Sequence record: NC_041911.1
Direction: 5' to 3' (one strand)
DNA length: 64,000 nucleotides
The notes beneath the pieces were generated by a model. The model saw only the letters and a program-made list of their open reading frames with translations. It made no database searches and was not told the origin of the DNA. Shown piece by piece: positions 6,759 to 47,548 of this stretch (positions are counted from its first letter, which is position 1; each line of letters starts with the position of its first letter). The position numbers were made by a program, and so were the translations under genes.

Positions 6759-8183
6759 TTATTCCTTGTGGCCGCCGCGATTGGCAGCCTTGGCTTCAGC
6801 GATCGAGAAGCGAATCCAGCGGGTCGCGCCGAAGTGGTTGAAGTACAGGCCGTGAGCGGCACCGAACACGCAACCGGCGGACAGGTCAGCCAGAACGCGC
6901 ATCAGGTTGCTGTACTTCGACAGCAGCTTGCGAGCAACTTCGCGGTCATCCTTGTCGTAGCTGTGACGGGCCTTGTACTTCGGCTCGAAGTCAGCGTCGA
7001 ACAGGGCGTCCAGAGCGGACATCACTGCGCGCTCGGCGCGAACAGCGGTTTCCTTCAGGTGCTTGATGTCGGCCGGCGAAGCGATCTTCACGCCAGCCGA
7101 GAAATCACGCTTGCCTTCTTCGAACACGACCTTGGTGCCTTCCAGGCCACCGGTGTTGTCCACGGTCACGCGTTCCGGCAGGTTCACTTCAACCTTGACG
7201 GAGCTGTGCTGGAAACGGGACTCGCCCATGTCCTGCAGGCCCTTGGCGGTGCTGATGCAGCGGTTCATCGCAGCAACAACGGTCTCGGGCTTGTCGGTGG
7301 CCCAGGAGTTCGACAGGGCGCGCATTTCGCCGACCAGCTTGTTCTCGACGAGGCGGATCACTTCGTCGAATTCCGAGCCGGCGTTATCGACGGCGGCGAT
7401 CGGGTTCTTGGTCGAGGACGGTGCATAGAAGCGCTCTTGCACGGTCTTTTCCCACTTGGCGCTCTGGAACGGCTTGCCAGCGTGACCATTGAGGATCTGG
7501 CCTTCTTTCTCCAGCTTCTCGTAGATCTTCGGCAGGCCGCGGAAGTAATCCGCGAAGCGCTTCAGCTTCTCGCCGGTCAGCTCGAAAGCTTTCTTGGCGA
7601 ACTTGGCCACAGCAGCCCACACCTTTTCGGCGCGTTCTTTGACCACGTCGACGAAGCCTTCGGTAGCGACGCGTTGGTCGAAGCCGAAGGATTCCAGAGC
7701 CACGCTTTCTTGCAGCGGCTCGCCGATGCCGGCCGCGTCGATAGCGGTGGTCAGCATCTGCACGGTTTCCGGGGTCAGACCTGCGCCCGGCTCGCCGACG
7801 GCAGCGGGAGCGCCTTCACCTGCTTCACCAGCTTCGCCGGCTTCAGCTTGAACCGGCTCCAGGCTGGCTTCAGCTTGTTCGGCGATGTCTTCCAGGGCAG
7901 CACCCATGCGGCAGAAGCGCATGGCGACGGATTGGAGGTGTTCCAGCGCCAGGGTATGTTCCTGGCTTTCCGCGACGGCGTCGATCTCGTCGTGGTCGGC
8001 AATGGCGGCGTCTTCGCCGAATTCCTTGGCGGCCTTCACGTCGTCGGTCGACGGTTCAGCCAGGCTGCCGTCTTCCTTGAAGCCGGGTTTCGGCTGCAGG
8101 GTCGACACTTCGGTCACTTCGGAGATATCCACCGCACCGGATGCTTCGCTTTCCAGTGCCGCGGTGAAAAAGTTTCGTTTCAT
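6759..8183 (-). CDS. Virion internal head protein (paralog family)
   Basis: Starts MKRNFFTAALES. Long acidic propeptide with ALEH, ALED and ALES sites. Confidence 0.7.
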   Translation of the reverse strand: MKRNFFTAALESEASGAVDISEVTEVSTLQPKPGFKEDGSLAEPSTDDVKAAKEFGEDAAIADHDEIDAVAESQEHTLALEHLQSVAMRFCRMGAALEDIAEQAEASLEPVQAEAGEAGEAGEGAPAAVGEPGAGLTPETVQMLTTAIDAAGIGEPLQESVALESFGFDQRVATEGFVDVVKERAEKVWAAVAKFAKKAFELTGEKLKRFADYFRGLPKIYEKLEKEGQILNGHAGKPFQSAKWEKTVQERFYAPSSTKNPIAAVDNAGSEFDEVIRLVENKLVGEMRALSNSWATDKPETVVAAMNRCISTAKGLQDMGESRFQHSSVKVEVNLPERVTVDNTGGLEGTKVVFEEGKRDFSAGVKIASPADIKHLKETAVRAERAVMSALDALFDADFEPKYKARHSYDKDDREVARKLLSKYSNLMRVLADLSAGCVFGAAHGLYFNHFGATRWIRFSIAEAKAANRGGHKE

Positions 8184-38266: not shown

Positions 38267-39820
38267 TTACTTCTCCCCTACCGTGTACGGTAGGTCGACC
38301 AGGAAACATTGCTTCATGCGGGCGGGCAGTAAGAGTTCTTTGGAGACGTGGTACTCTACCTGCTTAGGGACATCCATACAAGTGAAATACTCGAACTCCA
38401 TGTCTACCCCTGGTGTTTCGCGCAACCGACCTGGTCCTTGGATGTTCTTCTTACGCGCCCGCAGAGACGTCGTCATCAGAACAGTGATCAAGCCCTTGAT
38501 GTCGTGACCCGTACCTGCAGAACCCAGCGTGGAAACACACACGGTTGCATTCATCAGGTTATCGTAAGGGTCCTCCGCTACGTAACGCCGGATGTCCAGA
38601 TCCGGATGCTTCGATTTCAAGAAGTCCACGATGGTCGTGCACATCTGGATCGAGGCCGCGTAGATCAGGCATTTCTGCCCAGGATCAAAGCGAGTCAAGA
38701 AGCGTTCTTCAAAACGCTCATTGATCAACTCCAGATAGGGCTTCATCAAGAAGCTATAGCGCTTGGAATAGAAGTTCTTCTCAAACGCGATATGCGAGTA
38801 CATGGTCGAACCACGCTCAGTGGTCGACAGCTCTTCACCTTTCTTGATGTGGTAGCGCAAAGCGTACGACGTGATGTACTTAGCGCGCACGACAATCTTG
38901 CAACGCTCTTCGACCGGGTAAGCGATCTTGTACATCGACTCCGTAAAGGGATCGTCGTCCTCCAATGTAGCGGACAGCGAGATAGCGCGAGGAATGTGCG
39001 TGTACAAGTCGATCTTGAACATGCTGAAGAATTCTTCGTGCACCTCATCCTTGATTCTCGTACCAGCCCGGATGACTTGACAGAACTCCGGAGGCGTACA
39101 ATCGTAACCCATGTTCAGAATTTCATCACCGTGCTTCTCGTACAGGTTGATGTAGTTCATGTAGGTACGATTCGAGATCAGGATGGCTTTCTCGGTCAGA
39201 GTGCCTTCCTTTGCCCGAGCGATCACATCCATGAGGCTAGCTGCGCCCGCCACGGAAATGATGTCCTCTTCCGCCAATCCCAGGTTTTCGACCAAGTCAC
39301 TCGGCCACTTCTTCAGAAACTTCGGACACAGGAAACCCACGATCCGGAAGTTGTACTCTGCAGCTGCCCACGAAGCCAGATACGTCTTACCACGGCCAGG
39401 GTCAATCCCCACGAACTTACGCCAAGAGGGTTCGGGCACCTTCAAGTACGTGTGAAAGATTTCGTCTTGGTAATCACGCGGTGGCTTCAGCTCCGTAGGA
39501 AGCATCGGCGCATTCAGCGGCTCCGGGTCCACGAAGCCATATGTCACTTCAGTGAAGCCGTGATCAGGCACACCGATGTCAGCGAGGTAGGCGCGCCACT
39601 GTTTGTATTGACCGATGTGGAAGTGGATGTGGTTCTTTCGTGGGATATAGGCCGCAAACGTCTGAAAAGGAAGGCGACGTCCACGTTCCCACTTATACTC
39701 GATAAAGTTCCGGGCAAACTTCTTGGCAAGTTCAGCCCCTCTCGGCGACATGTTTTTCACCACAAAGTGATGCGAGAATATGTCAATCTCGAAGTATTTG
39801 CTTGGCTGTACAGCGCTCAT
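38267..39820 (-). CDS. SF2 helicase (UvsW-like, phiKZ gp75-like)
   Basis: Motif I PGRGKT, II KDEVH, III SAT, V GSAGTGHDI, VI QGPGRLR. Confidence 0.9.
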   Translation of the reverse strand: MSAVQPSKYFEIDIFSHHFVVKNMSPRGAELAKKFARNFIEYKWERGRRLPFQTFAAYIPRKNHIHFHIGQYKQWRAYLADIGVPDHGFTEVTYGFVDPEPLNAPMLPTELKPPRDYQDEIFHTYLKVPEPSWRKFVGIDPGRGKTYLASWAAAEYNFRIVGFLCPKFLKKWPSDLVENLGLAEEDIISVAGAASLMDVIARAKEGTLTEKAILISNRTYMNYINLYEKHGDEILNMGYDCTPPEFCQVIRAGTRIKDEVHEEFFSMFKIDLYTHIPRAISLSATLEDDDPFTESMYKIAYPVEERCKIVVRAKYITSYALRYHIKKGEELSTTERGSTMYSHIAFEKNFYSKRYSFLMKPYLELINERFEERFLTRFDPGQKCLIYAASIQMCTTIVDFLKSKHPDLDIRRYVAEDPYDNLMNATVCVSTLGSAGTGHDIKGLITVLMTTSLRARKKNIQGPGRLRETPGVDMEFEYFTCMDVPKQVEYHVSKELLLPARMKQCFLVDLPYTVGEK

Positions 39821-39861
39821 AGCTTGCCTTTATTTGAACGCGAAGAGGCAAGCCATTTAGC

Positions 39862-40542
39862 TCAAGCCTCCTCTCGGTCCATATGCGCGTGCATGATCAC
39901 ACTACGCACTCGGTAGTTTCCTTCATCACCATCCGGAGGGAAGGCAACGATACGTCCATCGCGATTGGCGTACAAAACATTACGTCCCGTGAATTCAGCA
40001 ATCGCGAGCGCTGCCGCTTTGGAACGCGATTGACCGTAGTTACAATGCACTATGATATTCGGACTATCGGTATGTTTTAACACAAAATCGACGATAGCTT
40101 CACCGTCTGCGATTTGAGCCCAACGATGCTTGAAGTGATGTTCATCGTATGCCGTAACGTGGTCATGGAAACCACGATGCAACACCTCTTTAGGTGGGTG
40201 GAAGAACTGCGGCGGTTCAGCGTGCGTGTCCGTAATGCTTATGCATACGTCATCCGGACGGAAGCGATAGCCAGAGGCGATATCGCGGCCCATGAAGATC
40301 ACATTCCGCTTATCCGTCGGAGCATTGGTGGCATTGTTACGCAAGTGAGTACACAGGTCCTGTTCGACTCTGTCTCCATACTTGCGCATCGTCGCTTCTA
40401 TAGCGGCTGGCGAGTTCCTGTCTACAGCTACAGGCTTTTGGGATTTCTGATTGACAATCACGGTAGAGCCAGTTTTGGCTGCATGCTCTGCCATACGTTT
40501 TGCTTGGAACCGTTGTTCCATCTTGCTAAGCTTTTTAACCAC
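39862..40542 (-). CDS. Cys-based (CX5R) protein-tyrosine/dual-specificity phosphatase-like protein
   Basis: IIVHCNYGQSRS signature and upstream F.DH acid loop. GTG at 40542 with GAGG RBS. Confidence 0.8.
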   Translation of the reverse strand: MVKKLSKMEQRFQAKRMAEHAAKTGSTVIVNQKSQKPVAVDRNSPAAIEATMRKYGDRVEQDLCTHLRNNATNAPTDKRNVIFMGRDIASGYRFRPDDVCISITDTHAEPPQFFHPPKEVLHRGFHDHVTAYDEHHFKHRWAQIADGEAIVDFVLKHTDSPNIIVHCNYGQSRSKAAALAIAEFTGRNVLYANRDGRIVAFPPDGDEGNYRVRSVIMHAHMDREEA

Positions 40543-40566
40543 GATAATAACCTCGTAGGAGTGGTA

Positions 40567-41382
40567 GTGGATACGATCAAAAATGGTATTCAGATCAGGA
40601 CAGAGGTGGTAGGCAACCAAACGTTGCGCGTTGGCATCCGTGCTGGCAACCCTGCCAAAGCTCCTCTTCTGTTATTCAACGGCATCGGCGCGAATATTGA
40701 AATTCTCGCGCACTTTGTCGATCTGTTCGACGACATCGAAGTCATTATCTTCGACATTCCAGGGACGGGTGAATCACCGACTCCTCTGGTTCCTTATCAT
40801 CTTGCTGCAATGGCTGTGTTAGCCAACAATCTGTTGGATCATTTAGGATATGCCCAGCAGGTGGACGTAATGGGCATCTCCTGGGGCGGAGCGTTGGCAC
40901 AGGAGTTTGCCTATCTTTATCCCGAACGTTGCCGTAAGCTCGTTCTAGCGGCAACCACGCCCGGTATAGGGATGGTTCCGGGTAGTATCTCGGTAATCTC
41001 CAAGATGCTGAACCCAAAGCGCTACACCAATCCGGAGTACATGACTGAGATTGGGGGAGAACTCTACGGTGGAGACTTCCGAGACAACCCGGAGCTGATC
41101 AAAGAACACGCCAGTCATCTCAAGCGACCAGAACTACGCGGTTATGTCTACCAGTTGATGGCGATCATGAACTGGAGTAGCCTGCGTTGGCTGGGAACGC
41201 TCAAACAAAAGACCTTGATCATGCACGGTAGTGACGATCCGATCGTTCCGCTGGCTAATGCTGAGATCATGGCGAGCAGGATTCCCGATTCGACACTACA
41301 CGTAGTCGATGACGGCCATCTCTTCCTTGTGAGTCGAGCTGCAGAGAGCACTGCTACGATTCGAGAGTTCCTGCACGGCTAG
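40567..41382 (+). CDS. phaZ: Poly(3-hydroxyalkanoate) depolymerase (intracellular PhaZ-type alpha/beta hydrolase)
   Basis: PLLLFNGIGAN.E, FDIPGTG.S.TP..PY, lipase box GISWGGALAQEFA..YPERCRKLVLAAT, GSDDPIVPL.N and DDGHLFL match Pseudomonas PhaZ blocks as recalled, with the Ser/Asp/His triad intact. GTG 40567 with GGAG RBS. Confidence 0.85.
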   Translation: MDTIKNGIQIRTEVVGNQTLRVGIRAGNPAKAPLLLFNGIGANIEILAHFVDLFDDIEVIIFDIPGTGESPTPLVPYHLAAMAVLANNLLDHLGYAQQVDVMGISWGGALAQEFAYLYPERCRKLVLAATTPGIGMVPGSISVISKMLNPKRYTNPEYMTEIGGELYGGDFRDNPELIKEHASHLKRPELRGYVYQLMAIMNWSSLRWLGTLKQKTLIMHGSDDPIVPLANAEIMASRIPDSTLHVVDDGHLFLVSRAAESTATIREFLHG

Positions 41383-41405
41383 ACAAAAAGAAAAAGACTG
41401 CACAA

Positions 41406-41431
41406 AAGCCCGGAGGTCTCCCTCCGGGCTT
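41406..41431. terminator. Bidirectional terminator
   Basis: AAGCCCGGAGG-TCTC-CCTCCGGGCTT between convergent genes, followed by TTATGACG. Confidence 0.8.
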
Positions 41432-41452
41432 TATGACGTCGAGAAGCAGGCG

Positions 41453-41887
41453 TTACTTGGCCTTGGTCTCGTACAGCTTGACCACCGGCTTACCAGCTTC
41501 CAGCACGATGGCCAGCGCCCAGCCGGCTTCTTTGGCTTCAGCGATCAGGTCATTGGCGCGCTTGGTCAGGTCGGCCTTCAGTGCGGCCTTGGAGGGCTTG
41601 CGAACCGGTGCCTTCTTCGCGGCGGGCTTGGCGCCGGCGGGAGCATTGGACGGCTTCTTGGCGGCGGGTTTCTTCACGCCGTTCACGGCGTCTTTCAGGT
41701 TCTGGTCGACGTTGCTGTTGGGCTTGTTCGCAGCGGTCTTCAGCGCATCACCGACGGCGGTGTTGGCCGGCACAGCGGGTTTTGCCGACACGGGCTTGCG
41801 GGGAGCCGGCTTCTTGACCGGCACGGAGGCACGGTCAGCAGTCTTGGCATCGGTTGCTTTCGTCGAGTTGGTCTTGCTTGCGGCCAT
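41453..41887 (-). CDS. Lys/Ala/Pro-rich histone-H1-like (AlgP/PhaF-tail-like) protein
   Basis: ATG 41887 with AAGGAG RBS. Repeats KKPAP, AKPAV, KKPAAKKP and AKPAAKK, then a short C-terminal helical domain. Confidence 0.7.
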   Translation of the reverse strand: MAASKTNSTKATDAKTADRASVPVKKPAPRKPVSAKPAVPANTAVGDALKTAANKPNSNVDQNLKDAVNGVKKPAAKKPSNAPAGAKPAAKKAPVRKPSKAALKADLTKRANDLIAEAKEAGWALAIVLEAGKPVVKLYETKAK

Positions 41888-41922
41888 GATTTCTCCTTGT
41901 TGGATGGCACGTTGAGTGGAGA

Positions 41923-42381
41923 TCAATTCCAATGATACTCCAGTTTGTTTTGCCGGTACTCGCCTTTGGTTACGTCACTGAGACGAAACCCATAGCGCTT
42001 AACGAATGCACGACTGTAATCATGCATCATTTCCTCCGCAACCGTGCAATGCGGAGTCTCACTTTCCAAATGACTAAGCATCCGGTCGATGAGTTTGAGA
42101 CCAAGCCCGCTGCCTTGCAAGTCATCATGCACGCGCACGCAGCGTAACTTAGGCTCGATTCCTACTTTACCCAGCGCAATTCCCGCTAGGCAATTCTTCT
42201 CCATCGCAACCAGTACAATGGAATCCAGAGATCCGACCACCTTATTAGCAAACCAGTGATCGAATCCCGGATAAAAGTGAGTCAGTCCGGTTAGGAACTG
42301 ACGGGCTTGTACAAGGATACCTGAAGACTCCTCGTGACTGAGGCGAATGATGTCCATGGTGTTTGTTGGATAAATGCTCAT
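41923..42381 (-). CDS. GNAT-family acetyltransferase
   Basis: Motif A VRVHDDLQGSGLGLKL and C-terminal RAFVKRYGF. Confidence 0.8.
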   Translation of the reverse strand: MSIYPTNTMDIIRLSHEESSGILVQARQFLTGLTHFYPGFDHWFANKVVGSLDSIVLVAMEKNCLAGIALGKVGIEPKLRCVRVHDDLQGSGLGLKLIDRMLSHLESETPHCTVAEEMMHDYSRAFVKRYGFRLSDVTKGEYRQNKLEYHWN

Positions 42382-42410
42382 AAAGAGCCAAACACCGGTA
42401 TAATCCTACC

Positions 42411-42821
42411 TCAGGCTACGAAGCCCATGCCGGACTTGATAACTTGTTCACGGAAGACTTCGTGCCAGGTTGCGAGTTGTTCACCAGTCAGGCCGTCCTT
42501 GTAGGAAGGCCATTCCGTCCCGAGGAAGAAGTGCGCGAAGGCATTGAGCAGCAGGTCGCCCGTTTCGCTATCCATACCGTACAGCGCGAGCTTGATCCTG
42601 GCCTCGGCGTAGAAGAAGAGAATCGTGTCTGCGTTCAGAGTGGAGAACGTGATACCAGTCTGTTCCTGGAGGAATGCCGCGGCGTCAACGAGACGCGCTG
42701 GCGGTAGTTTGGTGTCACGATTGGCAACCAGCAGCTTGCCGAGTTGCTCGACGAGACTCAGGCGTGCCTTGTCAGATTGTTCGTACTCACGTACTGCTAC
42801 GATCGGTTTTGCGATTACCAT
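42411..42821 (-). CDS. Hypothetical protein
   Basis: 136-aa ORF in the same operon-like run. Confidence 0.65.
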   Translation of the reverse strand: MVIAKPIVAVREYEQSDKARLSLVEQLGKLLVANRDTKLPPARLVDAAAFLQEQTGITFSTLNADTILFFYAEARIKLALYGMDSETGDLLLNAFAHFFLGTEWPSYKDGLTGEQLATWHEVFREQVIKSGMGFVA

Positions 42822-43092
42822 GTTTCTTCATCCTTTCTTTAATGAAACGGAACAGCTCCCTATTGAGAATCGGGATGCTGATAAGAACGAGATTAAACCC
42901 CGGCAGGGTTGCGATAAGAAACCACCAACCAATCCCTCCCCATTTCAGGTTATACCCGAACTTGGACGTGTTTTTGCGCCAAGGCTCGCGATACATCCGG
43001 ATGTCTTCCGAAATCATTACACCAAGCAAGTACAGCGTGAACACCAAGCTCAGACCCAGATAAGCCAAACCTACCCATTTCCAAATACTCAT
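42787..43092 (-). CDS. Small membrane protein (two predicted TM helices)
   Basis: WVGLAYLGLSLVFTLYLLGVMI and WWFLIATLPGFNLVLISIPIL hydrophobic segments. Likely start MSIWK at 43092. Confidence 0.65.
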   Translation of the reverse strand: MSIWKWVGLAYLGLSLVFTLYLLGVMISEDIRMYREPWRKNTSKFGYNLKWGGIGWWFLIATLPGFNLVLISIPILNRELFRFIKERMKKHGNRKTDRSST

Positions 43093-43144
43093 TTTTCTTT
43101 TTTCCAGCACAAAGTCAGGAGCCGAAGCCCCTGACCCTTATGCC

Positions 43145-45187
43145 TTAGTAGTTACCAGGACCATTCTGCAGATTGCGCACCCGCTGTTGATGATCGAATA
43201 CCTCACGCGGCATTACGATGCCGTCGAAAGGATGATCCGGTCGATTCTTCAGCGAGAACGATTCCGGTGCGTAGATACCTTCAGCGTGATGTTCGTACGC
43301 CATGAAAGGAGCCAGCGAACGATACAGAATGATGTTACGCAGCACACCCAAGCCACTTTCCGTCCACGGCTTCGGCATCGAGTAGTCGTAACGTTCTGCA
43401 GAGCGGATCAGCGCCCCACGCAACGTCACTTCCACCACGGCGAGGTTTACCCGCGCCTTACGGTTCATCAGTTCGGTCAGCTCCACGAGAGTCGAGGCAG
43501 GGTCGATCAGGCGATCTCGCTCCACCACTTCCTTCACGGTCGATTCCAACACCTTCGCGATGTCTCGCGAGTGGTCAGACATGCTGAAGTCACGCATCGG
43601 CAGCGAGGCAAACGGCACGCTCCACTTCCAGCCTTTCAGCGGGATCATGTAGCAACCAGTCTCTTCATCCACCGTGTAGCTATGAGTCTTGATGTGCTCC
43701 AAGAACTCATACGTGAGGAACGGCAGACGTTTACCATCCTGCAGACTGATTTCTTCGCCTTCACCCTTGCCATTGCGAATGATCACTTCCGACAGTTCCG
43801 ACATCCGCGATTCCGGCAACACCTGGAGGTTATCCACGATGAAGATGTCGCTCAGGTTCGGTGCTGCTTCGCAGTCGAACATCAAGAACAAGTCCCCATT
43901 CTTGGAGTTTGCCTTCAGCGTGTCGGCGAACAGGTAGCGGTTACCGTCGGTGGACAGCTTCACGAACTGCTGGGTCCGTGCATCGATCGTCGCACCTGCG
44001 ATGCTCTTGGACGAGTCCAAGTGCTTCGTAGACAACACACCCTGCGCGTTCTTTTCAGTAACGTGGGTGCAGTTGGCGTGACCGATATTGCTGTTGGCCG
44101 GGATCAGTTCGGACATCATCCCGTAGCATACCGAGCAAATGCCGTTCGGATCAGTCGGATGACCGCAGTACATCGCGCTGCGCAGCTTCAGCGTTCTGCC
44201 GATGAGGTGCTTGTCGTCTTTGTGAACGGTCTTGAGGATACCGTCGTCGTCAACGAAATGCTTACCTTCCAGGATCTCCAGATCGCTCGGACGATCCTCG
44301 CGTTTGCCTTGCACTCGCCAGTTGAGGTAGCGAGTCGTACCGCAGTCCATATGGTGCAGGCGTTCCACACCCATGTCCATCGTACGCAGCTTACGCGAGA
44401 AGTATTCCGTATCCTGCAGGTCGCCCTTTGATGCATTCAAGGCCTTCGCTGCAGAGCGCGACTCGATCTGGATGTCCCGTTGCGAGCGGATACCCTGATA
44501 ATAGCCGCGCATGATCGGAATACCGAAGCGCTCGTTGTTGATGTCCGTCAGGAAGCCGCGAGGCCCCAGACACTGATGTACCTGCTTGGACGATACCAGA
44601 CCAGAACGATACAGCTTGGACAGAGCGTTGTTGCGCAGCTCCGGCTTGTGCTTCAGCACCGAATCGATCGTGTAGTAGATATCCGCAATGGACTCTTCGT
44701 CCGGCTTTGCGCGTTCGTACGCATCCACCACGTCCTGGTCCTTGAACACGCGGTGGAAGTCGAACAGGTTCAACGAGGTCACGTACTCTTCCAAGCGCGT
44801 TACCATGTCGTTGTAGTGCTGGTTAGACAGGTTGTACGCCAGCTCAGCCAGCTCAAACCGGATGTCAACCATCTGTTCGATGTTGTGCGAGGCGGCCAGG
44901 AAGTCCGCACAATCCCACAACACGTTTTGGATCAGCTTGATGTGGGTTTCCATACCCACACGGTTGCCTTTGAGCACCGACTGGATGTGGTGCTTCTTCA
45001 GGATGGGGAGTCCCGGATAGTTCGCATGGAATTCCCAGAAGTACCGGCTGTAGATGACCTCCTTGTGGTTGGTCTCCAGTTCTTCACCATCGTCAAAGAC
45101 GAGGATGAACGGCCCCATTAGGGTTTCCCATGTCTGCTCGATGCTCAAACCGAGAATGGTTCGAGCAGCAATGCGTTTGAGTGACAT
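43145..45187 (-). CDS. Non-virion RNAP beta' C-terminal subunit (phiKZ gp74-like)
   Basis: QCLGPRGF, IESRSA, DTEYFSRKL, DCGT and LRSAMYC...CSVCYG are beta' motifs. Confidence 0.9.
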   Translation of the reverse strand: MSLKRIAARTILGLSIEQTWETLMGPFILVFDDGEELETNHKEVIYSRYFWEFHANYPGLPILKKHHIQSVLKGNRVGMETHIKLIQNVLWDCADFLAASHNIEQMVDIRFELAELAYNLSNQHYNDMVTRLEEYVTSLNLFDFHRVFKDQDVVDAYERAKPDEESIADIYYTIDSVLKHKPELRNNALSKLYRSGLVSSKQVHQCLGPRGFLTDINNERFGIPIMRGYYQGIRSQRDIQIESRSAAKALNASKGDLQDTEYFSRKLRTMDMGVERLHHMDCGTTRYLNWRVQGKREDRPSDLEILEGKHFVDDDGILKTVHKDDKHLIGRTLKLRSAMYCGHPTDPNGICSVCYGMMSELIPANSNIGHANCTHVTEKNAQGVLSTKHLDSSKSIAGATIDARTQQFVKLSTDGNRYLFADTLKANSKNGDLFLMFDCEAAPNLSDIFIVDNLQVLPESRMSELSEVIIRNGKGEGEEISLQDGKRLPFLTYEFLEHIKTHSYTVDEETGCYMIPLKGWKWSVPFASLPMRDFSMSDHSRDIAKVLESTVKEVVERDRLIDPASTLVELTELMNRKARVNLAVVEVTLRGALIRSAERYDYSMPKPWTESGLGVLRNIILYRSLAPFMAYEHHAEGIYAPESFSLKNRPDHPFDGIVMPREVFDHQQRVRNLQNGPGNY

Positions 45188-45244
45188 CGTGTTTCCTTTA
45201 AAAGATCAGGCCCGAGGTGGTGAGTCTCGGGCCTCCGGCTACCA

Positions 45245-47548
45245 TTACACGAAGGTAAGGGCGGATGGTTTCGGTTCCAGTTCTTGGTACGGGTGGTACG
45301 CGAACTCCCAGCCATTACACAACGCCAGGTGCTTGGTCAACTCCAAAGGCTTCGCATTGCCGAGCGGGATCTTGTTACGATCCACCAGAACAGGAATGTT
45401 CGTAGGCTTGTCGGCGCGCAGGATGGTGTAAACACCCATGCGATGCGATGCAATGTTGTTGTTGCGGTCAATGATCTCCGCCATCGGCAACCAACCCATG
45501 TAGGAAGTACCGATCGCAGTTTCCGTTTCACCCCAAGCCCGGATAGCTTGTTGACGCCACGGCGACGCATGCTTGTCTTGGTTGTTGATGTGCGACAGAA
45601 TGCCGAAGTTCTGCAGTTTGCCAGACGATACCGACGTCCAGTCATCACCCGTTTTCTCCAGCAGGATGAAGTAACACTCACCGATGAGGATCGGCTCCTT
45701 CGTTGTCACCATGCGCCCAGAGTTCCCGCGATACGTCACGCGGCTCATGTGCGGCATGTAGTCCTTCATGATCGCATCCACAGCGTCCGGCAGCTCACGA
45801 TCGTTGTTACTCGGGTGGAAGAGATAGATCCCATCCTCCAGCAACGAGATCATGTGCTCGGCGCGCTTACCCTTGCGAGCTACGTCGTAGTAGAACTCTG
45901 CCATCTCCATGTTGATGATTTCGATGTACGACAAGAACCGATCCCACGCGTGGTTGGCACGCGAGTCGGTATGGTGGTTCTTGAACGCTTCCTCGACACG
46001 CATCTTGTCAGCCAGCGTGAGCTTCTGCCCATGGATATCCGGATACGCCACACCGAACAGGTCGCAGAACTCTTTGACGAGATCACGCGATGCCGCGTTA
46101 TAAGCCTGTTCGTACAAGCGACCCAAGTTCTGCCGCGACACCGTTGCACCAGCGTCCATTACGATGTGTGCGCGGTTGCCTGCAGCATCCACTGGCATGT
46201 CTTCCTTCGGCACGATCTTGACGACAACGCCTTTACCACCCCAGCAGTCCGTGATTTTGTAGCCACAAGTCGGTGTGGATTCATACTCCACCACGAACTC
46301 GATGGTGAAATCGTCCATCGGAGAGGCGCGATAGATCTTCTGAACACGTTGCTCTTCGTTGGTCGCTTCCTCCTGCATCACCGAGTAGGCATGCTTGACC
46401 AGGTTCTTGAAGTTGTGCGAGATCCGCAGAGCGTTCTTGCCGGTTTTCGGCTTGTTGCCCTTGAGGACGTGATACTGACGCAGGACTTCCTTGTAGAAGA
46501 CCCGTGCCGCACGATCATACTTCAAAGCCTGTTCGTTGCAGATGTTCGGAGCGAATGGCGTGCGCGATACGTCATGGCTGACACGAATGTCAATCACACG
46601 ACCGCGGCCGAGCGCCATGCCTTCTTCATGTGCCGGTGTCACGTAGGTGAGCTTGTCAAAGACGTAGTTCACTTCACGACTGGCCGCCGCAGACATTTCG
46701 ACTGCCGAATAGGCGTCGCTGTAACTGCGCAACGCCATCAGCAGACCGTCGGCCCGAACATAATCACCGATTTCCGGGAAAGGTTTGTAGTTGTTTTCGT
46801 CTCCGTAGATGTTGAGTGCGAAGTGTGTCGAACCGTACGAAACCGTGCGCTTCTCGTATTTACGAGTCTTCAACCACGGCACCGCTTCTTCGGACAGCAA
46901 AACACCGTCCTCAGCCACTTCTGGGAAGCTTGCGAACATTACGTTCAGGTTGATGCCGTAACAGTAGTTACCATCCGGCCGTTTCGAAGGGGAGTCTTGC
47001 AGAATCGTCCCACCGAGCAGATCGCTGCCACCCAGACCAGTACGCGGATCAGGCACTCGCAGATTGCGCGCCGCATCCGTGTTCTTGTACGGGAAACCGA
47101 AATACTGATGGTTGGAGAAGTATTCCTTCATCGAGATGCAATCGATCTCGCCATCGTCCTGATACTCCACGATCAGGACCGTCTCAGGATTGTGACGGAT
47201 GGCTTCCGTGCCCACCATTTTGGTGTTGTAGAACGGAATCATTGCCATGATCCTGCAATCCCGCTCTACTTTCGTCGAGAAGGTTGCACGACCATATTGA
47301 ATTTCAGCACCGGTCTGAATCCGGCGCGGAGTTGGTTTGGCAATCACCAGGCATTGTGATGTGTGGCTTGCACCAAACATCTGCTTACGCGATGCCGAAA
47401 CAGTTCCATCGAATGGAGACAAGCTCATTACGTTCGCCAACTCCGGATAGAGTTGGTTTGGTTCGTAGTGATAGTTCCATACCGACGAGAGTGCTTGTAC
47501 CAGTGTGGTGGGACTGGTACTGCCGTTATCATCAGTAATATTTTCCAT
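45245..47548 (-). CDS. Non-virion RNAP beta C-terminal subunit (phiKZ gp71-73-like), uninterrupted
   Basis: SASRKQM..H..Q, AEDG, GYKITDCWGGKGVV, SRQNLGRLYE, G..YFILLEK and WGETE correspond to beta regions H/I. Confidence 0.9.
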   Translation of the reverse strand: MENITDDNGSTSPTTLVQALSSVWNYHYEPNQLYPELANVMSLSPFDGTVSASRKQMFGASHTSQCLVIAKPTPRRIQTGAEIQYGRATFSTKVERDCRIMAMIPFYNTKMVGTEAIRHNPETVLIVEYQDDGEIDCISMKEYFSNHQYFGFPYKNTDAARNLRVPDPRTGLGGSDLLGGTILQDSPSKRPDGNYCYGINLNVMFASFPEVAEDGVLLSEEAVPWLKTRKYEKRTVSYGSTHFALNIYGDENNYKPFPEIGDYVRADGLLMALRSYSDAYSAVEMSAAASREVNYVFDKLTYVTPAHEEGMALGRGRVIDIRVSHDVSRTPFAPNICNEQALKYDRAARVFYKEVLRQYHVLKGNKPKTGKNALRISHNFKNLVKHAYSVMQEEATNEEQRVQKIYRASPMDDFTIEFVVEYESTPTCGYKITDCWGGKGVVVKIVPKEDMPVDAAGNRAHIVMDAGATVSRQNLGRLYEQAYNAASRDLVKEFCDLFGVAYPDIHGQKLTLADKMRVEEAFKNHHTDSRANHAWDRFLSYIEIINMEMAEFYYDVARKGKRAEHMISLLEDGIYLFHPSNNDRELPDAVDAIMKDYMPHMSRVTYRGNSGRMVTTKEPILIGECYFILLEKTGDDWTSVSSGKLQNFGILSHINNQDKHASPWRQQAIRAWGETETAIGTSYMGWLPMAEIIDRNNNIASHRMGVYTILRADKPTNIPVLVDRNKIPLGNAKPLELTKHLALCNGWEFAYHPYQELEPKPSALTFV

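Follow-up and report, generated by a model that had tools for sequence, protein, structure and literature searches.

Storage polyesters potentially hold a large share of a starved bacterium's carbon, and the question raised by the locus described here is whether a phage can draw on them. The locus lies on a stretch of 64,000 nucleotides (the window) that forms the terminal 64 kb of the record of Ralstonia phage RP12 (NC_041911.1; 279,845 bp). At 40567..41382 on the plus strand this window carries an intact coding sequence for a 271-residue protein resembling the intracellular poly(3-hydroxyalkanoate) (PHA) depolymerase PhaZ; it is RP12 ORF269 (FDH28_gp152), at 256412-257227 of the record. Positions 36000-46000 of the window are 100% identical to RP12 (NC_041911 / AP017924) and 99.6% identical to phage RP31. 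RP12 is a phiKZ-related, nucleus-forming jumbo phage of Ralstonia solanacearum from Thailand, with split multisubunit RNA polymerase genes and a nuclear shell protein (ORF288) in its genome, and it replicates with its own RNA polymerases in a rifampicin-insensitive manner (PMC5468394). The identity of the gene is not new, since Matsui et al. (2017) listed RP12-ORF269 and RP31-ORF266 as poly(3-hydroxyalkanoate) depolymerase in their text and Table S2 (best match E 2.65e-117); GenBank calls the product hypothetical and RefSeq an esterase/lipase. A preliminary description of this DNA, made from the sequence alone, had placed the gene in a jumbo phage, as the size of the record bears out, and had known of no characterised phage example. 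Our literature search likewise found no paper characterising any phage PhaZ, but the identification itself has been in print since 2017. What is new here is the assignment of the protein to a branch of its family, its conservation in RP12-like metagenomic phages, its natural absence from the related FLC phages and its recurrence across phage lineages.

The ORF269 protein scores 291.3 bits against the NCBIfam equivalog model TIGR02240 (poly(3-hydroxyalkanoate) depolymerase), over a cut-off of 250.6 bits (E 7e-87, profile positions 5-263 of 276). Models of the enol-lactonase PcaD stayed below their cut-offs (TIGR02427, 93.9 versus 255.85 bits; NF051488, 102.1 versus 390 bits), as did the model of the short-chain intracellular PHA depolymerases of the PhaZa type (NF050089, i_nPHAscl), with 39.6 bits against a cut-off of 300; the RutD and BioH models were likewise far under theirs. 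Pfam matched only generic alpha/beta-hydrolase (Abhydrolase) families and not PHB_depo_C, and among the PHROGs the protein falls into phrog_789, an 'esterase/lipase'. The match is well outside what chance would give, and the protein has 4101 database relatives at E<=1e-10. The reading frame and the sequence blocks from which the preliminary description had recognised PhaZ proved exact, all of the blocks being present in the translation: FNGIGAN at residues 37-43, GISWGG at 103-108 with the YPERC block next, DDP at 223-225 and DDGHLFL at 248-254.

The catalytic triad is complete. Its nucleophile Ser105 (codon 40879..40881, plus strand, as are the other elements of the gene given here) lies within G-I-S-W-G-G and is joined by Asp224 (41236..41238) and His251 (41317..41319); each is invariant in 135 of 135 aligned homologues, a count that the search pattern biases for Ser but not for Asp and His. 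The PhaZ of Pseudomonas putida has its triad at S102/D221/H248, a lid at 133-192 with a hinge at 190-195, and an FNGIG loop at 34-38 whose Asn is essential (PMC12504323). In RP12 the triad and the FNGIG loop (residues 37-41, 40675..40689), which connects lid and core and includes that Asn, sit at a constant offset of +3 from these positions, and the helical lid or cap (residues 136-195, 40972..41151) matches the P. putida lid. Over residues 37-251 the alignment has no indel columns relative to Burkholderiaceae homologues and two relative to those of Pseudomonas, and RP12 retains 80 of the 93 columns (86%) that are at least 95% conserved in 63 cellular homologues linked to the synthase PhaC. 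An AF2 model built on a 59-sequence alignment (pLDDT 96.7, pTM 0.94) has an alpha/beta core with a helical insertion at residues 141-201, made of helices 141-148, 151-154, 156-167, 169-172, 175-183 and 190-201. The model begins with beta strands at residue 3, and no signal peptide is apparent in the N-terminal region, where the highest 15-residue Kyte-Doolittle mean is 0.25 for windows starting in the first 20 residues. Its closest solved structures are metagenomic esterases, with Est1 (6eb3, 8v16) at a TM-score of 0.84-0.85 and 31% identity, and a PHB depolymerase of Bacillus thuringiensis is a distant fold match at 17-18% identity (PHB, poly(3-hydroxybutyrate)). Esterases come first in this search because no TIGR02240 structure has been solved, and the fold comparison therefore cannot decide the substrate. 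Taken together, these comparisons confirm that ORF269 belongs to the PhaZ (TIGR02240) family of alpha/beta hydrolases and is intact, with full triad and lid, and predicted to be cytoplasmic. They bear out the triad and the missing signal peptide of the preliminary description and, by the state of the active site and lid, point to a catalytically competent homologue of intracellular PHA depolymerases.

Where does the protein belong within this family? Its best cellular matches, at 57-62% identity, are annotated as poly(3-hydroxyalkanoate) depolymerase and belong to Paraburkholderia, Cupriavidus, Caballeronia, Burkholderia and Trinickia. They lie in a gene cluster of an acyl-CoA dehydrogenase or synthetase, a MaoC-type hydratase, PhaC, phasin and PhaZ, often followed by DUF445, which is the 'group C' organisation of a review of Burkholderia sensu lato (PMC8231600). 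In C. pinatubonensis JMP134 the genes of the fadE-phaJ-phaC2-phaP-phaZ cluster are co-transcribed, and its class-II-like PhaC2 polymerises 3-hydroxybutyryl-CoA and not 3-hydroxyoctanoyl-CoA, i.e. makes PHB (PMC4636328). We scanned one genome per species, kept the best 80 loci and sought PhaC with reference proteins from those loci. A class-II-like PhaC was found directly upstream in nearly all 80, in the order maoC-phaC-(phasin)-phaZ in Burkholderiales and Alphaproteobacteria and as phaC1-phaZ-phaC2 in Pseudomonas (including P. oleovorans, P. paraeruginosa and M. resinovorans), whose proteins are 48-51% identical to that of the phage. Of the 69 metagenome loci whose contigs reach far enough upstream, 61 have PhaC next to the gene. 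A close link to PHA synthesis genes therefore characterises the family, and the phage protein clusters with these PhaC-linked PhaZ genes rather than with generic esterases; clustering with the latter was the outcome that the preliminary description had named as speaking against its reading.

That description had likened the protein to Pseudomonas PhaZ block by block. The blocks are indeed collinear, but the nearest clade is another one. At 33 positions that discriminate Burkholderiaceae from Pseudomonas, RP12 is Burkholderiaceae-like at 18 and Pseudomonas-like at two; the other 13 hold a different residue, which in many cases is a conservative change from the Burkholderiaceae state. A neighbour-joining tree of 60 sequences (264 columns, 200 bootstraps) unites the RP12 protein and two metagenomic phage copies in all 200 replicates (100%) and places this trio as sister to the Burkholderiaceae in 56%, with the Burkholderiaceae alone supported at 82%. 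By sequence comparison, then, the nearest cellular clade of RP12 PhaZ is Burkholderiaceae group C and not Pseudomonas PhaZ.

The two metagenomic copies, P0002 (65% identity) and P0003 (66%), are the closest proteins in a collection of 5.8 billion, and both are encoded on short contigs syntenic with RP12. One of these contigs (L145) carries homologues of the N-terminus of the RP12 helicase (55%) and of ORF268 (52%) directly before the gene; on the other (L146), the gene after phaZ matches the C-terminus of ORF270 (46% over 50 residues). The three phage copies have the derived residues E69, N202, M82 and M102 in common. They differ from one another at dN 0.24-0.31, and no dN/dS ratio can be given among them because synonymous sites are saturated; the PhaZ protein is 65-66% identical across phages whose neighbouring genes are 52-55% identical. 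The GC content of the gene (0.52) is close to that of the window (0.545) and differs from that of its bacterial homologues (0.61-0.71). A metagenome scan with exact peptides of the phage protein gave no match, and an alignment-based one returned only PhaC-linked bacterial relatives (51-61% identity) and no further RP12-like contigs.

Besides RP12 and RP31, the closest cultured relatives are the phages FLC1-1B and FLC4-3B, whose helicase is 62% identical and which have no phaZ. At the corresponding site of FLC4-3B, gp291 (54% identical to ORF268) is followed by gp292, whose C-terminus matches that of ORF270 (67% over 36 residues). Since the gene is missing between the same anchors, the island in which phaZ sits is a variable one. 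It spans 39862..43092, between the helicase ORF267 and ORF274, the gene for RNA polymerase beta', and contains ORF268, phaZ, ORF270, a GNAT acetyltransferase (ORF271), ORF272 and ORF273; the flanking helicase and RNA polymerase beta' genes are conserved, and the FLC4-3B interval holds gp290-gp292 only. RP12 phaZ is a putative auxiliary metabolic gene, a metabolic gene of host type placed between phage helicase and RNA polymerase genes in an isolated phage. Selection has kept it in the phage lineage, where two diverged RP12-like contigs have it at the same position and 86% of the conserved columns are retained. By the tree and the base composition, it probably goes back to a single old capture by an RP12-like ancestor, with a donor near the Burkholderiaceae type that has the phaJ-phaC2-phaP-phaZ cluster; long retention under purifying selection and loss or absence in the sister lineage would have followed.

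The depolymerase travels without its synthase. No homologue of PhaC, MaoC, phasin or DUF445 was found within the window, and PhaC was found neither in the RP12 record nor in cultured phages among 50,697 deposited phage records; the absence of a PHA locus around RP12 phaZ is expected because the gene is a captured one. Among those records a close homologue occurs only in RP12 and RP31. The only non-Ralstonia PhaZ/PhaC matches in this phage collection were 'Acinetobacter phage MD-2021a' records (CAKLQH02..., CAKLQF02...) of up to 305 kb, which carry pcaD, pcaB, phbC and sat genes and look like bacterial contigs filed as phage.

A scan of IMG/VR gave 52 further loci at 34-53% identity, 49 of them at 43-53% across almost their whole length. 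The TIGR02240 cut-off was passed by all nine phage-borne copies tested, seven IMG/VR copies among them at 314-435 bits, and no PhaC, MaoC or phasin was found in the fetched flanks of the IMG/VR loci. These copies group with Pseudomonas PhaZ and not with RP12, and several phage lineages therefore took up the depolymerase independently, always without the synthase. The genomic settings are those of real phages but differ. A first group comprises 18 contigs whose flank includes the major-head family (for example L092, at 1967-2809, L101 and L110). Here the gene is embedded in the head-tail module, on the strand opposite to it, and has as neighbours the major head protein (phrog_771, which shares 53% identity with the coat protein of temperate siphophages of the ES18/phi297 type), portal, tape measure and neck genes; its position between the major head and neck genes is moron-like. 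In a second group it is found near a large terminase, a RecE-like exonuclease, a reverse transcriptase, a methyltransferase and an integrase. On one integrase-carrying temperate contig (L129:8765-11829) the reverse transcriptase (phrog_1423, E 2e-118) is upstream and the DNA methyltransferase downstream of the PhaZ-like gene. On a 284-kb contig the neighbours of the gene are jumbo-phage structural paralogues and a phage DNA polymerase (E 1e-225), and a 228-kb contig is similar; in the latter, six tandem paralogues of about 310 residues (phrog_12615/16120, virion-structural-like) directly follow the PhaZ-like gene (L131:10886-16667, minus strand). Jumbo phages of two kinds and temperate phages of at least two kinds have thus each acquired the depolymerase on their own. 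Some 50 phage contigs with phaZ and without phaC point to repeated selection for the depolymerase alone, and such pickup in several lineages argues for a general advantage over accident.

We note that, of the 50 IMG/VR copies compared, 10 have as their nearest non-viral sequence a PhaZ-family gene at 7001-7792 of the 1.17-Mb plasmid pPL1 of Pseudomonas silesiensis, 49% identical to that of RP12. No phaC was found within 7 kb of it in this record, which carries no annotation. No structural gene of contig L092 recurs on the plasmid, and we make no claim that it contains a prophage.

What could such an enzyme do for RP12? The preliminary description had supposed that the host accumulates PHA, and R. 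solanacearum grown in rich broth or kept in water does show uniform PHB inclusions by electron microscopy (PMC4174814). With such granules in the host, a carbon-mobilising role is plausible. The phage RNA polymerases would transcribe phaZ as a separate unit, on the strand opposite to its neighbours, and the soluble enzyme would remain in the host cytoplasm, outside the phage nucleus, where it could attack the ester bonds of host PHA (PHB) granules. The (R)-3-hydroxyalkanoate monomers or oligomers so released would enter host pathways and yield acetyl-CoA and reducing power for phage replication, with the phage supplying the degrading enzyme only and neither synthase nor phasin. We infer expression during infection, activity on PHB over medium-chain PHA and a benefit to the phage. 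We give roughly even chances to this reading as a whole, in which a captured cytoplasmic PHA depolymerase is used on host granules to mobilise carbon.

Several observations weigh against it, the substrate foremost. A single enzyme of the family has been characterised, and it is almost wholly specific for medium-chain PHA (PMC12504323), whereas the host granules are PHB. This puts the substrate of ORF269 in question, a difficulty softened by the PHB-making synthase of the group C cluster (PMC4636328), although the nearest clade is itself uncharacterised; we regard the substrate as the main weakness of this reading. The host genus also seems to be without this type of enzyme. The best 120 matches contain no Ralstonia-named homologue, whether the phage protein or a Cupriavidus homologue is the query, and the 80 best genome loci include none; a plasmid collection, for which inclusion of the Ralstonia megaplasmids is unconfirmed, had no Ralstonia match either. 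The lists of the best 120 suggest that the host genus lacks the enzyme, which may then be foreign to the host's granule system. Within the family, the TIGR02240 score of RP12 is the lowest tested, at 291 bits; the other phage copies reach 298-435 and a Pseudomonas PhaZ 595. Thirteen of the 93 conserved columns are changed, five of them non-conservatively (G17N, P49H, G69E, R78H, G202N), and the lid is the least conserved region, with 50% identity to Burkholderiaceae and 40% to Pseudomonas (core, 58% and 51%). Searches of the PDB and of viral models were topped by generic esterases or alpha/beta hydrolases only. Finally, the gene is dispensable for this type of phage, as its absence from FLC1-1B and FLC4-3B implies.

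Other explanations accept the enzyme and change its use. RP12 might carry a real depolymerase whose benefit lies in clearing nucleoid-attached PHB granules, making space for the central phage nucleus, for capsid traffic or for lysis. All the evidence for membership in the PhaZ family applies equally to this explanation, and the shell protein ORF288 indicates that RP12 builds a phage nucleus in a host that bears granules even in rich broth; in the related Ralstonia eutropha, PHB granules are attached to the nucleoid (PMC3556143). Most of the other phage copies are, however, in temperate siphovirus-type genomes without a nucleus, so that a nucleus-specific reason cannot explain the recurrence, and we consider granule clearance unlikely as the principal benefit, while noting that it and carbon supply are not mutually exclusive. 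A substrate other than PHA is less probable again. The protein could be an esterase of PhaZ fold acting on a small (R)-3-hydroxyacyl ester or lipid, such as the quorum signals methyl 3-hydroxymyristate or methyl 3-hydroxypalmitate. The changed columns, the diverged lid, the derived residues shared by all three phage copies and the seeming lack of the enzyme type in the host genus would all suit a shifted substrate. Against it, 86% of the columns conserved in PhaC-linked depolymerases have been kept; we hold this to be quite improbable. Its more specific form, a quorum-quenching esterase that would turn against the host's (R)-3-hydroxy-fatty-acid methyl esters and shut down density-dependent exopolysaccharide with no carbon-mobilising role, has in its favour that these esters are the host's signals and that diverse unrelated esterases and lipases hydrolyse them, whereupon exopolysaccharide falls (PMC10349395). 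The signal acts extracellularly, however, and the phage enzyme has no export signal. Moreover, the copies of other phage lineages group with Pseudomonas, and the trait that those bacteria share with Ralstonia is PHA, not the signal. This form has slim prospects, below those of the small-ester explanation in general.

The remaining two explanations deny either the role or the family. A passenger gene without a phage role, left over from horizontal transfer, would fit the location in a variable island between core genes, the lack of the gene in the FLC phages and its product not being among the 32 virion proteins in the supplementary tables of RP31. Such a leftover would hardly keep an intact frame and a complete triad, have its base composition fully shifted to that of the phage, stay at the same site with its protein better conserved than its neighbours while synonymous sites became saturated, or be acquired again and again by other phages, and we think it very unlikely. 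Least probable of all is a generic carboxylesterase or PcaD-like enol-lactonase mislabelled as PhaZ, already disfavoured by the 94-102 bits on PcaD models with cut-offs of 256-390, by the TIGR02240 result and by close relatives that are all PhaC-linked. RefSeq and PHROG 789 do use the name 'esterase/lipase', and metagenomic esterases (31% identity) head the list of solved structures, but these generic names come from the lack of a solved PhaZ structure and from a broad PHROG and not from closer kinship. Carbon mobilisation by a captured depolymerase is the reading that we prefer.

ORF269 comprises 271 codons and a stop in an intact frame and starts with GTG, five bases before which lies a Shine-Dalgarno-like AGGAG (40557..40561, plus strand). 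The 45-bp region between the divergent ORF268 and phaZ (40522..40566) gave no match to a sigma-70-type promoter in a promoter scan, a result without weight in a phage that relies on polymerases of its own for transcription. In the gap between the convergent genes phaZ and ORF270, a GC-rich hairpin (41404..41434; 9-bp stem 41408-41416 / 41421-41429 with a 4-nt loop) has an A-run before and a T-run after it and looks like a two-way terminator. It was read by eye, an automated terminator scan having passed over it on account of the short T-run.

Both neighbours of phaZ are on the opposite strand. The divergent ORF268 (39862..40521, minus strand; 219 residues), one of the conserved anchors of the insertion site, contains a His-Cys-x5-Arg-Ser stretch resembling the signature of protein tyrosine or dual-specificity phosphatases. 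A Cys-x5-Arg motif is a phosphatase signature, and the Pfam DSPc match is weak and sub-threshold (E 0.0076, residues 147-171); ORF268 may be a candidate phage phosphatase. The convergent ORF270 (41453..41887, minus strand; 144 residues), whose short conserved C-terminal segment is the second anchor, consists of 24% Ala, 18% Lys and 10% Pro, a composition like that of a histone H1 tail, with 11 motifs of the KKP/AKP/KPA type in its first ~105 residues. No family model matched it, and the idea that this Ala/Lys/Pro-rich protein is phasin-like was dropped as supported by no family model. Beyond it, the GNAT acetyltransferase ORF271 (41923-42357, minus strand; Pfam Acetyltransf_10, E 1.6e-5) has no counterpart in the same interval of FLC4-3B.

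From a wider point of view, the combination of an isolated phage, a known PHB-storing host and a natural relative without phaZ, FLC4-3B, makes the use of storage polyester by phages approachable. Our analysis also brings into view a large Burkholderiaceae branch, still uncharacterised, of a family that has been described as a Pseudomonas speciality. If it is true that this branch acts on PHB, the substrate range of the family would be wider than believed, which would be relevant to enzymatic bioplastic recycling.

How does the RP12 gene compare with known systems? With PhaZKT of P. putida KT2440/KT2442, the prototype of TIGR02240 acting on medium-chain PHA, it shares family, length class, cytoplasmic location and the arrangement of triad, loop and lid. 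It differs in not being flanked by phaC1 and phaC2 and in that the host of RP12 stores PHB and not medium-chain PHA. The group C PhaZ of Burkholderiaceae is closer, with no indels in the catalytic span and a partner synthase whose polymer type is that of the RP12 host, whereas the phage carries the depolymerase alone and not the cluster. Esterase Est1, from a metagenomic library, offers the closest solved structure but is not a member of the PhaZ family. Among viruses, phaC, phbB and other PHA genes have been reported on viral contigs from PHA-producing mixed cultures (PMC12013262) and phaZ on a Gloeobacter prophage (PMC13317609). These cases are annotation only, concern mostly synthesis genes or a different depolymerase annotation and come from uncultivated material, while RP12 is an isolated lytic phage with a known host. 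The phage copies that we found in IMG/VR (L092-L141; PHROG 789) belong to the same family and likewise lack phaC, but they represent independent acquisitions, mostly in temperate genomes.

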